Source of the DNA: Obrimoposthia wandeli
Taxonomy: Eukaryota
Length of the DNA: 64,000 nt
Direction: 5' to 3'
Assembly (NCBI GenBank): GCA_977020255.1
Contig: CDROCS010000652.1
Span: 1 to 64,000 of the forward strand
How positions within the stretch are numbered: position 1 is the stretch's first letter; each line of letters begins with the position of its first letter. The translations under genes and the position numbers were made by a program. The notes beneath the pieces are model-generated. The model did no database searches. It was given only the letters and a program-made list of their open reading frames with translations, and was not told where the DNA came from. Below are positions 10,898 to 17,581 of this stretch, in pieces.

Positions 10898-11056
10898 TTA
10901 ACAAAACAAAATAAAAATATTTAAGAAAATAAATATTAAAATAAATTCTCAAACCAACCCCATAAATAAATCATAACGGTAGCGTGGGAAAGCACAACGA
11001 ACCACAATAAAAAATAAAGCAAAAAAAACAGATAAGCCAATTAAAAAAATAAGAAA
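10898..11056 (-). CDS. nad1: C-terminal piece of NADH dehydrogenase subunit 1 (nad1b), about 52 aa
   Basis: FLIFLIGLSVFFALFFIVVRCAFPRYRYDLFMGLVWEFILIFIFLNIFILFC*. This carries the ND1 hallmark R..xPRxRYD.LM..xW that is missing from the main nad1 ORF. Confidence 0.88.
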
Positions 11057-11112
11057 TTAGGGTTTTAGTGTTTAAAAAAAAACTAAAACCTTAAATTCTC
11101 AGAAACTAACCT

Positions 11113-11178
11113 AAAACAAGCTATAATAAATTTTGAAAATTTATAGTTTTTTTTTTAACTTAAGCCTCTAAAAACTTT
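11113..11178 (-). tRNA. trnW: mt tRNA-Trp(UCA)
   Basis: Perfect stem TAAAT-TTTCAAA-ATTTA. Confidence 0.6.
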
Positions 11179-11335
11179 TTAAACCCTTTTTTTTTCTAAA
11201 AAAATATTTTCAACGCAAATGAAGAAGTTTAAAAAAATTTTAACTTAAAAAGAGAAAAACATTAATATGGAAAAGAAAAATCTTTTAAGATTTACTATAT
11301 CGGAGTAACCTACAAATCGCAGTCCTCATATTTTA

Positions 11336-12685
11336 CTAAATAATTGAAGGAAAAAAAACAAAGAATAAATACAAAATAGCAGAATGGAGTAATAGTTTTA
11401 AACTAAAATAATAAAGACTTGAACTACTAATCCAAAATTTAGATTTTAAAACCTTCTTCCCAAAAGAAACCAAACAATATAAAAAAATACAAAAAAAACC
11501 AGAAAAAAAAACATTAAAAACAAAAAAAACTCAAGAAAATGGCATGTTATTAACAGAAACCCCCATCAAAATAATCTCAGAAATAAGATTTAACCTAAAA
11601 GGAGCTGAACAATTACCAATACAAAGTAGAAACCAAAAAAAACATAATAGCGGTGTCACCCAATAAAACCCACGGTTTAGCCAAATATTACGAGACCCTG
11701 AAATTTCATAAAAACATTTTACACCTAAAAATAACGCAGAAGAACAAAAAGCATGAGAAAAACTAATTAAACTTGAACCAAAAAAAGACAAATACCCCCC
11801 AAACCAAATAGAAATAGAAATAAGACTCATATGTACTACTGAAGAATAAGCAACAAAAGACTTTAAATCATACTGGCGGCTACAAACTAAATTAAGAACA
11901 ACAACACCAAGCAAAAAAAAACAAACCCAAATACTAACCAAAATATTATTACCCAAATACCTAAAACTAAAAAAAGTTTGGAAAAAACGAATAAGACCAA
12001 ACACACCTAACTTTAAAAGTATGCCTGCCAAAATCATAGAGCCAAAAACAGGAGCTTCAACATGAGCCTTCGGCAGCCACAAGTGGAAACCAAAAACCGG
12101 TAACTTGATTAAAAAAGCCAAAACTCAGAAAAAAAATATGTGTCACTGTGTAGCACGCTCAAACAGATGAAACCCAACCACCAAAAAATTTTTAGCGGGG
12201 TGTTGGTATGAAAAAAAAGATCTTCTATAAAAGAAATCTGAAAAAAACATCATAATACAAAATAAAAGAGGAACAGAACCTAGTAAAGTATAAACTAAAA
12301 AATAATTAGATGCTAAAATACGCTCGGGGTTTGACCCCCAAAACAATATAAATAAAAGAATGACAACAAACCTAGATTCAAAAAATATATATAGGCGTAT
12401 CATATTACAAGAAGAGTAGAAAAAAAAAAAAACAACCAGCATATAAACAAAAAAAACATTAAACACAACAGTATTCTCTTTTAAGCAAAAAAAATAAACA
12501 AATAGTAATATGAAAAGAGAAAATAAAAAGAAAAAAGAAAAAAAAATATCATGGAATTTATTAGCAGTCTTTAAAGAAAAAAATAAAAAATAAAAATATT
12601 TATTACTAGCTAGAAAATAAACCCTAAAAGCACTAATAACAAACAAAAAAGAACACCTGTCGAAAAAAAAAACCCTAAAAACCAA
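11336..12685 (-). CDS. nad4: NADH dehydrogenase subunit 4
   Basis: The two track ORFs are in frame across TGA codons; HLWLPKAHVEAP and AYSSVVHM. Confidence 0.96.
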
Positions 12686-12960
12686 AAAAAAAACCAGACT
12701 TCACATTTTTCTTATCAAAAAAACGAACAACAAAAATTAAAACAGAAAGAGCAATAGCACCTTCACAAACAACAACACCTAAAAAAATAAAAAGGTATAG
12801 GAAGTCACCCGTTCAATTTAACTGAAACAACAAAAAAATAACTATGTATGCTATTTCAACACTAACAAAAAAATTTAACAAACGAATTTTAAAAAAATAA
12901 TAAATAAAAAAATGAAAAAACAAAAAAACAAAAACTAAAAACCCAGAATTAAATAACAAT
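12675..12960 (-). CDS. nad4L: NADH dehydrogenase subunit 4L
   Basis: VVCEGAIALSVLIFVVR; 3' end ambiguous at a poly-T run. Confidence 0.8.
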
Positions 12961-12964
12961 CTTT

Positions 12965-14964: not shown

Positions 14965-15030
14965 TTTAAAACTAAATTTTATTCTTTAATTCCACAAATT
15001 AAAATTTTTTTTTTCTATAAACTAAAGATT
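14965..15030 (-). tRNA. trnH: mt tRNA-His(GUG)
   Basis: Perfect stem TTAAT-TTGTGGA-ATTAA. Confidence 0.65.
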
Positions 15031-15127
15031 TTAAAACAATTTAATTAAAATTAGCTAATTATAATGTTTAGCTCCCTAAAAAAAGAAAATTTTTTATGCT
15101 TAAAATACAACAAATTTTAAAAAAACC

Positions 15128-15192
15128 AAAAGTTGGAATAAAAAAAATTCCAATGTTTGGGCCGAAACCAAACTTAAAACTTTTTTTTTAAT
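15128..15192 (-). tRNA. trnR: mt tRNA-Arg(UCG)
   Basis: Perfect stem TTTGG-TTTCGGC-CCAAA. Confidence 0.65.
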
Positions 15193-15202
15193 AATATATA
15201 AA

Positions 15203-16750
15203 TTAAACACACATGGGTACTACAGAACCATGCGTATGTTGTGAAAAGGGAAAAAACCCAGAAAAAGCCCAATCGTTTTTACAATTGTTAGACCTTGAAT
15301 TTTCTATCTTTCGGTTAGAATAAACAGCTTCAAAGAGAATAAAAAAAAAATATGCAACACCAACAACAGAAATAATAGACCCAACCCTAGAAATAGATTT
15401 TCAAAAAACAAACTGATCAGAATAATCAACATAGCGGCGAGGCATGCCCTGCAACCCTAAAAAATGTTGGGGGAAAAAAGTCATTTTAACTCCCACAAAC
15501 ATAATAACAAAATGAGCTAAAAGCATTTGGTTTTTTAGACCAAATCCAAAAAACATAGGGGCCCAATAAATAAACCCACAAAATATAGAAAAAACAGCCC
15601 CAAGACTAAGAACATAATGAAAATGGGCAACTACATAGTAAGTATCGTGTAAAGCAATATCGAGAGAGGCATTAGAAAGAATAATGCCAGTTAAACCACC
15701 AACAGTAAACAAAAAAATAAAACCAAGAGCTCATATAAAAGAAACATTTTTAGTGCTCCATTGAAGACGTCTACCATAAGCCGAAGCTAACCAACTAAAT
15801 ATCTTTATACCCGTGGGAACCCCTATAATCATAGTTGCACCCGTAAAATATGCGCGGGTATCAACATCTAAACCCACAGTGTACATATGATGGGCTCAAA
15901 CAATAAAACCTAAGAACCCAATTCTTACCATAGCATACACCATACCTAGATGACCAAAAGCAAAATCCTTCCCCCTTCTATTAATAATAACATGAGAAAC
16001 CATACCAAAACCTGGAAGAATTAATATATAAACCTCAGGGTGACCAAAAAATCAAAAAATGTGTTGAAACAGAATGGGATCCCCACCACCAGACGGGTCA
16101 AAATAAGAAGTTTTATAGTTACGGTCTAAAAGAATCATGGTTAAACCCCCTGCAAGAACAGGAAGTGATAAAAATAACAAAAAAGCAGTAACCAACAAAG
16201 ACCATATAAACAAAGGAAGTTGAAAAATTTCAACTTTAGACATATTTAAAATAGTACAAATAAAGTTTATAGCCCCAATAATGGAACTAATACCAGCTAA
16301 ATGTAAAGAAAAAATAGCTAAGTCAACAGAAAAACCAGAATGTGCAATATTACCAGTGAGGGGTGGATAAACAGTCCAACCAGCCCCAACACCAGAATAA
16401 GAAAACATAGAAAAAATAATTAAAATAGAAGAAGGGATTAACAAACACCAACTTAAATTGTTTACACGCGGGAATAGTAAATCTGGAGTATTAAGAAATA
16501 AAGGGATTAACCAATTACCAAACCCACCAACCATTACTGGCATTACAAAAAAAAAAATCATTATTAAACCGTGAGAGGTTATTAGACTTTTATATAAATC
16601 TGATTTACCCGATAATAAGCCGGGGTTGGAAATCTCCATCCGAATTAAAACCCTTAGATTGGTGCCAACCAGTGCCATTCTAACACCTAGAATAAAATAT
16701 AAAGTGCCAATATCCTTATGATTAGTAGAACAAAACCAACGTTTTACAAT
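15203..16750 (-). CDS. cox1: Cytochrome c oxidase subunit 1
   Basis: [35 protein letters not shown] and GMPRRY; single frame with TGA=Trp; start uncertain. Confidence 0.98.
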
Positions 16751-16852
16751 ACCTCTTGAAACACTTAATCTGCTTCTGAAAATAACTAAAATTGAAAACC
16801 TTTTTTTGTTTCAAATTGTTTTTTTTTTAAAAAAATAATTTTTTTTTTAATT

Positions 16853-17581
16853 TTAAAACCAAAGCAAAATTGTTAGAAACCTAATAAAAATAATATTCCC
16901 ATACTCCCCCAGAAACAAAAAAGCAAAACCCAAAGCACCATACTCCGTGTTAAAACCAGAAACTAGCTCACTCTCCCCCTCTGAAAAATCAAAAGGTGCA
17001 CGGTTAGTCTCAGCAACGCAAAACATAAACCAAATAAAAAATAAAAACGAAAAAACAACCCAGAAAAAAAAACCAAACATTTTAAAAAAAAACAAATTAT
17101 AATTACCAACCCAAACAACCAAAAAAAATACTAAAAAAATAAAACCAACCTCATAAGAAATAACTTGAGCTGCACCACGCAAAGAACCAAGTAAAGAATA
17201 CTTTGAATTACTACCCCAACCAGAACCTAATTTAGAGTAGACATTTAAAGAAGAAACACAAAAAAAAACCAATAGTCCAAAGTAAAATTTATTTTTTGAA
17301 TCCCCAACAGGAAAAAAAAACCAAACCGTAAATAGAAGTATAACACTAAATAAAGAAGAGGTTCAAAAAACAAATATGTTTGTTTTACCTGGTTGGAAAG
17401 AATACTTTACCAACAACTTAATAGCATCTGCCAAAGGAGTTAGAAGACCTAAAAAACCAACCTTATTTGGGCCCTTACGTATCTGAATATATCTCATAAT
17501 CTTTCGCTCCAGCATAGTAATAAAAACAACAGATAGTAAAACACTCACAACTAAAAATATATATTTAACAAAAAACAACAT
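16853..17581 (-). CDS. nad1: N-terminal major piece of NADH dehydrogenase subunit 1 (nad1a), 242 aa
   Basis: ERK...RKGPNKVG, LGSLRGAAQVISYE and ETNRAPFDFSEGESELVSGFNTEY; ends in TAA after LLWF without the PRxRYD segment. Confidence 0.95.

Follow-up and report, generated by a model that had tools for sequence, protein, structure and literature searches.

Evidence for the fission of nad1 into two complementary genes in the mitochondrial lineage of a triclad-related flatworm

Protein genes of animal mitochondria are almost always unsplit. Ciliates carry nad1, which encodes the ND1 subunit of complex I, as two genes named nad1_a and nad1_b (PMC5374615); in Tetrahymena and Paramecium a long N-terminal and a short C-terminal nad1 gene lie apart in the mitochondrial DNA (mtDNA), and structures of Tetrahymena complex I (PDB 7tgh and related entries) show ND1 as two chains, ND1a and ND1b. 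Among animals, cox2 of scoliid wasps (Dielis/Campsomeris) is split into cox2a and cox2b (PMC5374615), and was still described so in 2023 (PMC9895450). In the literature searched, this was the only reported fission of an animal mitochondrial gene into two complementary genes; no split nad gene was found there for any animal, and no split or truncated nad1 for flatworms. Here, we describe a nad1 in two pieces within 64,000 nucleotides of Obrimoposthia wandeli DNA, comprising the first 64 kb of contig C652 (CDROCS010000652.1) of a 1.35 Gb animal assembly and hereafter called the window. As in Tetrahymena and Paramecium, a long N-terminal gene, nad1a, and a short C-terminal gene, nad1b, are not adjacent:

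nad1a, 16853..17581, minus strand: 242 codons (17581..16856) ending LLWF, followed by a TAA stop at 16855-16853
nad1b, 10898..11056, minus strand: 52 sense codons (11056..10901) encoding the ND1 C-terminus, followed by a TAA stop at 10900-10898

Translation of nad1a with the flatworm code yielded a protein identical to the stored protein of 242 amino acids (aa; P0001). This protein matched the Pfam profile PF00146 (298 positions) at positions 2-68 and 73-239 (E = 1e-16 and 2.5e-42), aligned with mouse ND1 up to residue 242 of 318, and found its best matches in land and freshwater planarians, at 58-65% identity. An AGA codon stands at a conserved glycine of ND1, which raised the possibility of a tunicate source; this was rejected because the best matches are to flatworms and the flatworm code reproduces P0001. 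By homology with the topology of mammalian ND1, nad1a would comprise transmembrane helices 1-6. Between the nad1a stop and cox1 lie about 55-105 A/T-rich bases, and no frame of this spacer encodes the end of ND1. A first-pass annotation of the same DNA had proposed that the main nad1 open reading frame (ORF) stops after LLWF and that the DNA beyond it, A/T-rich and then cox1, offers no rescue; both statements agree with the present results.

The end of ND1 was found in the clean ORF to which it had previously been assigned, nad1b, which is bounded by TAA codons at 11059-11057 and 10900-10898 and retains an intact PRYRYD motif. Searches with nad1b used its first 35 residues, up to a TGA tryptophan codon. 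These residues matched positions 251-281 of 298 in PF00146 (E = 4.2e-4, 20.2 bits) and residues 274-298 of a plant Nad1 in the PDB (E = 3e-4), and a search of the same 35 residues against 1.8 billion representative proteins returned two low-complexity matches only. Because the alignments are to solved ND1 structures and ND1 topology is well established, helices 7-8 and the PR(F/Y)RYD loop can be provisionally assigned to nad1b, with the cut probably lying in the loop after helix 6.

The two pieces were complementary. Together they supply 242 + 52 = 294 aa, in line with the sum of about 294 aa first estimated, and the joined sequence could be aligned over its full length with unsplit ND1 proteins from 11 flatworms, leaving only a gap of 3 residues where the pieces meet. 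Apart from this gap, nothing was lost or duplicated across the two pieces relative to their unsplit homologues. The nad1b product was 38-44% identical to the last ~52 residues of triclad ND1, and nad1a and nad1b together span nearly the whole PF00146 profile, as a member of the ND1 family does. Each piece has its own stop, and 15 genes lie between them. The first-pass annotation had placed nad1b upstream of nad1a in transcription order; all genes are on the minus strand, however, which puts nad1b 5.8 kb downstream of nad1a.

The split layout was not confined to the window. More than 40 places in the assembly matched nad1a (729-bp query) and at least 40 matched the nad1b block (347-bp query), at 75-100% identity and on many contigs; these counts are lower bounds. 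From these, 20 copies of the nad1b region (75-94% identity) and 24 copies of nad1a were retrieved. The trnW-nad1b-trnD block was present in 20/20 of the former, most of which were collinear over nad4-trnI-trnA-trnW-nad1b-trnD-trnL2, with a few truncated or interrupted on one side. At least 15 of the 24 nad1a copies (78-98% identity, different contigs) run through TGG TTT TAA into the spacer and cox1, and the TAA stop of nad1a was conserved in all old copies examined. The five oldest nad1a fragments (76-82%) end in nuclear DNA before the joint, with no nad1b-like sequence after them. In all, more than 30 copies, spread over different contigs and 75-100% identical, showed the split layout; two of them, on C109 and C440, were 100% identical. 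Because the differences between copies are of the mitochondrial, third-position kind, the copies are read as samples of the organelle lineage through time, and on this evidence the split layout is not peculiar to the window's copy.

Selection on nad1b was assessed by treating differences common to at least three independent old copies as changes of the mitochondrial lineage and private differences as neutral nuclear decay. The nuclear mitochondrial copies thus served as a dated fossil series, which allowed selection to be tested without a second species. Of the 18 shared nad1b differences, 14 fell at codon position 3 and 0 at position 2, and 12 were synonymous. The 67 private differences were spread 23/24/20 over the three codon positions, and 52 were non-synonymous. 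The two classes differed by Fisher's exact test in position (third position, 14/18 versus 20/67; p = 3.5e-4) and in synonymy (p = 1e-3). In copies of intermediate age (L012-L020, about 88-92% identical over a 366-nucleotide block), nad1b was 94-99% identical to the modern sequence, compared with 82-90% for trnW and 60-81% for the 43-nucleotide spacer. Old-versus-new differences near the 3' end of nad1a were also mostly at third positions, by inspection only. Because the shared changes are mostly third-position or synonymous and the private changes are evenly spread, nad1b is, judged by its substitutions, a selected coding sequence, translated in this frame throughout the time that the copies cover.

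Collectively, the complementarity of the pieces, the recurrence of the layout in many copies of different age and the coding-type substitutions bear out the original proposal that the C-terminus of ND1 is encoded by a separate gene 5.8 kb away. We put the probability at roughly 70% that this is a genuine, selected fission of nad1 with separate translation of the two pieces. Several observations weigh against this reading. On its own, nad1b falls below the Pfam gathering cut-off (20.2 versus 27 bits), as expected for 35 residues. It offers neither an ATG nor a GTG from which translation could begin without loss of helix 7, and its start codon is assumed. The selection test draws on no more than 156 coding bases, and recurrent nuclear mutation could account for a few of the nad1b changes counted as shared. 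Finally, the window's own copy of nad1 stands in a nuclear-type context, and no contig is identified with certainty as that of the organelle.

A different account would make nad1b a dead remnant, with complex I containing either a truncated ND1 that lacks helices 7-8 or a replacement encoded elsewhere. The stored ND1 protein of 242 aa and the lack of a standard start codon in nad1b speak for it. However, in the copies of intermediate age nad1b changed more slowly than trnW and the spacer, its changes were almost wholly third-position or synonymous, and both its ORF and its PRYRYD motif are intact. Moreover, every solved structure of complex I includes the region that would be missing, within the conserved core of ND1. 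A dead remnant is therefore improbable, and fission of a working nad1 remains the preferred reading.

The surroundings of the two pieces are as follows:

trnV, 17584..17652, minus strand: tRNA gene directly upstream of nad1a, called by ARAGORN in mitochondrial mode
A/T-rich spacer, 16797..16852, minus strand: from the nad1a stop to the probable cox1 start, which was placed from the sequence
cox1, 15206..16796, minus strand: directly downstream of nad1a, recognised by its ORF and N-terminal motif
nad4, 11339..12736, minus strand: upstream of the trnI-trnA-trnW-nad1b cluster, recognised by Pfam Proton_antipo_M and its ORF
trnW, 11100..11169, minus strand: upstream neighbour of nad1b, called by ARAGORN in mitochondrial mode
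stem-loop, 11052..11099, minus strand: 48 nucleotides filling the gap between trnW and nad1b, with an 8-bp core at 11061-11068 / 11083-11090
trnD, 10823..10893, minus strand: directly downstream of nad1b after a short poly-A run, called by ARAGORN in mitochondrial mode
atp6, 9922..10590, minus strand: downstream of trnD-trnL2-trnP-trnS1, recognised by Pfam ATP-synt_A

Thus, nad1b lies in a tRNA cluster between nad4 and atp6, flanked by trnW and trnD, as had been noted from the sequence. The 8-bp hairpin noted before it was also recovered, as the core of the longer stem-loop. The gap between trnW and nad1b measures 43 nucleotides; the stem-loop starts at the end of trnW and stops 1-2 nucleotides before an ATT codon at 11050-11048, and the 206-nucleotide piece between the tRNAs folds at -32.1 kcal/mol (z = -2.2). 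In copies down to about 83% identity the hairpin was kept, with both sides of the stem changed, from GGGUUUAG/CUAAAUUU in older copies to GGUUUUAG/CUAAAACC in the modern sequence. A fast-changing spacer that keeps its hairpin hints at a role in RNA cutting or in the start of translation. The spacer before cox1 holds a second, weak stem-loop (UUGAAA / UUUCAA), whose bases are kept in the alignment of old copies; its fold energy is only about -2 kcal/mol, too weak for functional weight to be placed on it, and it was set aside.

Non-standard start codons have been reported in flatworm mitogenomes (PMC12870015). The sole GTG in the nad1b ORF is codon 18, and it was rejected as the start: its use would remove helix 7, and it is GTA in six old lineages. 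ATT stands at codons 3 and 6 (11050-11048 and 11041-11039) and is kept at both in nearly all old copies with an intact 5' end. One of these two codons is the likely start of nad1b.

In animal mitochondria, tRNAs mark the cut sites of a long transcript (the tRNA-punctuation model). Under the preferred reading, the mitochondrial lineage of a triclad-related flatworm carries a true fission of nad1, in which nad1a would supply helices 1-6 and nad1b helices 7-8. Cutting of the transcript at the tRNAs would release nad1b as a small mRNA of about 200 nucleotides with a 5' stem-loop, and translation of this mRNA would start probably at ATT. The two polypeptides would then be made separately and would assemble within complex I into an ND1 of two chains. 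These steps, from RNA processing to complex I assembly, are inferred. A prediction of the complex from P0001 and the first 35 nad1b residues, run without an alignment, gave a score of 0.01 and a predicted local distance difference test value (pLDDT) of about 50, which weighs neither for nor against a two-chain ND1. With respect to origin, a likely course is a tandem duplication that had one of its breakpoints in nad1, after which the complementary halves made redundant were lost; this would turn cox1...trnW-nad1-trnD into nad1a-cox1...trnW-nad1b-trnD.

The first-pass annotation had offered two mechanisms, a two-chain ND1 or trans-splicing. The former fits the data, while the latter is disfavoured. 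Were the pieces joined at the RNA level, by trans-splicing or by the joining of modules, a single full-length ND1 would be translated, and there are precedents: plant nad1 undergoes trans-splicing, and in diplonemids gene modules are joined although no introns can be recognised. Against this, the in-frame TAA of nad1a was kept over about 22% divergence and nad1b is cleanly bracketed by tRNAs. The flanks, 43 nucleotides between trnW and nad1b and ~55-105 nucleotides between nad1a and cox1, are too short for intron halves, and no Rfam intron family was found in positions 1-18000 at E <= 0.01. Given the conserved nad1a stop, flanks of tens of bases and no match to an Rfam intron family, trans-splicing is unlikely, and RNA-level joining as a whole is quite improbable. 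An intron-less, diplonemid-like form of post-transcriptional joining, which would have to remove the conserved TAA, is very unlikely, as the same stop, the tRNA bracketing and the tiny flanks argue against it; to our knowledge, such joining of modules is not known from animal mitochondria.

Positions 1-17733 of the window form a single mitochondrial-type unit with a T-rich coding strand and all genes on the minus strand. Its gene order is V-nad1a-cox1-R-E-H-C-cox3-Q-(probable rrnL)-nad4L-nad4-I-A-W-nad1b-D-L2-P-S1-atp6-(unidentified ORF)-nad5-N-cob-cox2-nad3-(probable nad2)-repeats, which differs from the conserved mitochondrial gene order of freshwater and land planarians (PMC13059034). The tRNA genes were called with ARAGORN in mitochondrial mode, which gave no convincing trnK or trnT within 1-17733; the bacterial mode found zero tRNAs. 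The non-coding region of the unit holds tandem arrays of a 403-bp repeat, at 1545-4724 and, in the adjoining copy described below, at 19408-23455 (7.9 and 10.1 copies, 97-98% match), so that repeat number differs between the intact unit and the older copy.

Positions 17734-28541 repeat the first 9.9 kb of the unit at 93-94% identity with broken reading frames. Comparison of cob, cox2, nad5 and nad3 between the two placed 133/199 substitutions at codon position 3 and counted 14 indel columns. Because the substitutions are mostly at third positions and are accompanied by indels and broken frames, this stretch, on the pattern of change, captures an earlier state of the mitochondrial lineage and has decayed since then, as a nuclear insert. 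It is joined head to tail with the intact unit, exactly as in a circle, which suggests a concatemeric insert, a later insert beside an older one, or an assembly join. For trnS2, a call was made in the older copy (17831-17896) but none at the corresponding position in the intact unit (~98-163). Beyond 28541 the DNA is non-mitochondrial; it includes an ORF at 31500-32114 on the minus strand with a weak match to virus-type Pox_A32 packaging ATPases (E = 8.5e-6), of the kind borne by Polinton-like elements, and a 2.2-kb repeat pair at 36604-38822 / 45324-47551 (96.6% identity). Because the mitochondrial stretch is followed by a decayed copy and then by non-mitochondrial DNA, the window's mitochondrial copy probably represents a recent insertion into the nuclear genome or a chimeric join rather than the organelle itself. 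The load of nuclear mitochondrial copies in this assembly is very heavy.

A protein search of the whole assembly with the ND1 of an unsplit relative (P0003) found no unsplit host-type nad1 spanning the joint. Seeming full-length matches on C1406, C2590, C2592, C114 and C1079 were rejected as read-through of the spacer, cox1 or nuclear flank. The first-pass annotation had pointed to a full-length nad1 elsewhere as the sign of a rearranged nuclear mitochondrial copy (NUMT); the sole full-length ND1 with the mitochondrial code (TGA codons) in the assembly was on C5352, and it was rejected as the host gene, being 64% identical to Littorina ND1 (P0030), with cox1 DNA on the same contig only about 67% identical to that of the host. 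C5352 (26,920 bp; loci L055, L049 and L056) is a mitogenome concatemer of 34% G+C with two cox1 copies about 17 kb apart, and its ND1 is preceded by L1-L2 and followed by P, which are mollusc-like tRNA neighbours. It looks like a gastropod-like mitogenome derived from prey, the host surface or contamination, and not from the host. ORFs resembling nuoH, free of stops, 320-430 aa long and with 35-40% identity to ND1, were present on C4486, C5867, C1360, C1658, C2701, C1693, C400 and others; by their coding sequences, these contigs probably belong to bacterial symbionts or contaminants.

That the split is an artefact, produced by a rearranged NUMT or a mis-assembly while nad1 of the organelle is normal, is extremely unlikely: although in the window the mitochondrial unit adjoins an older, decayed copy and DNA that is not mitochondrial, and the sequencing runs (five, all of a single sample and study and none listed as RNA) hold only 68-90% of sampled words, other contigs carry dozens of independent copies with this layout, 75-100% identical (the 100% copies on C109 and C440 included), no copy carries an unsplit host-type nad1, and the differences between copies are of the mitochondrial third-position kind.

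If nad1 has undergone fission in this lineage, it would be the first split complex I gene found in animals, by the literature searched. The practical consequences extend to annotation. The first-pass annotation had expected nad1b, as a short piece without an ATG, to be missed automatically, and the stored ND1 protein is indeed only 242 aa. Standard annotation gives a truncated ND1 and misses nad1b, which affects flatworm alignments, estimates of selection and work on gene order.

A marine triclad, Miroplana shenzhensis, may be affected in the same way. The ND1 of triclad relatives is unsplit and about 297 aa long, except for the Miroplana entry (P0006), which has 243 aa, ends within 5 residues of the nad1a end without PRFRYD, and is 58% identical to nad1a. 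About 225 ND1 homologues were retrieved, and just two of them, the entry of the animal itself and the one from M. shenzhensis, end right after helix 6 without PRFRYD. The paper describing the Miroplana mitogenome is silent on a short or split nad1 (PMC9176356). The fission may be shared with some marine triclads, or the Miroplana record may be truncated for another reason.

Compared with the described systems, the flatworm locus resembles each in part. In land plants, as here, the coding parts of nad1 are scattered in the mitochondrial genome. However, plant nad1 exons lack stops of their own and are flanked by long group II intron halves, whereas the flatworm pieces show a conserved stop, flanks of tens of bases and no detected intron family. 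The cox2 of scoliid wasps is, like the flatworm nad1, a bilaterian mitochondrial gene in two complementary genes that both reside in mtDNA. It is a different gene, for a subunit of complex IV, and was split when a 3-kb cluster of ORFs, among them a candidate nuclease, was inserted. Unlike the wasp cox2 pieces, the flatworm nad1 pieces are separated by ordinary mitochondrial genes, and a duplication-loss rearrangement is therefore indicated.

The closest likeness is to the ciliates. The C-terminal piece has 59 aa in Tetrahymena and 52 aa here, and the cut falls in the same loop. Residues 7-34 of Tetrahymena ND1b align, weakly (E = 0.55), with residues 5-33 of nad1b, and ND1a aligns with nad1a. 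The flatworm split differs in being independent, in having its genes on one strand, punctuated by tRNAs and read with the flatworm code, and in lacking an ATG start for the short piece. Separate translation has been shown for ciliates, and would apply to the flatworm by analogy of layout. If the fission is genuine, flatworms and ciliates have converged on a break in the same loop between helices 6 and 7. This loop would then be a natural seam of ND1, beyond which a second chain can contribute helices 7-8.

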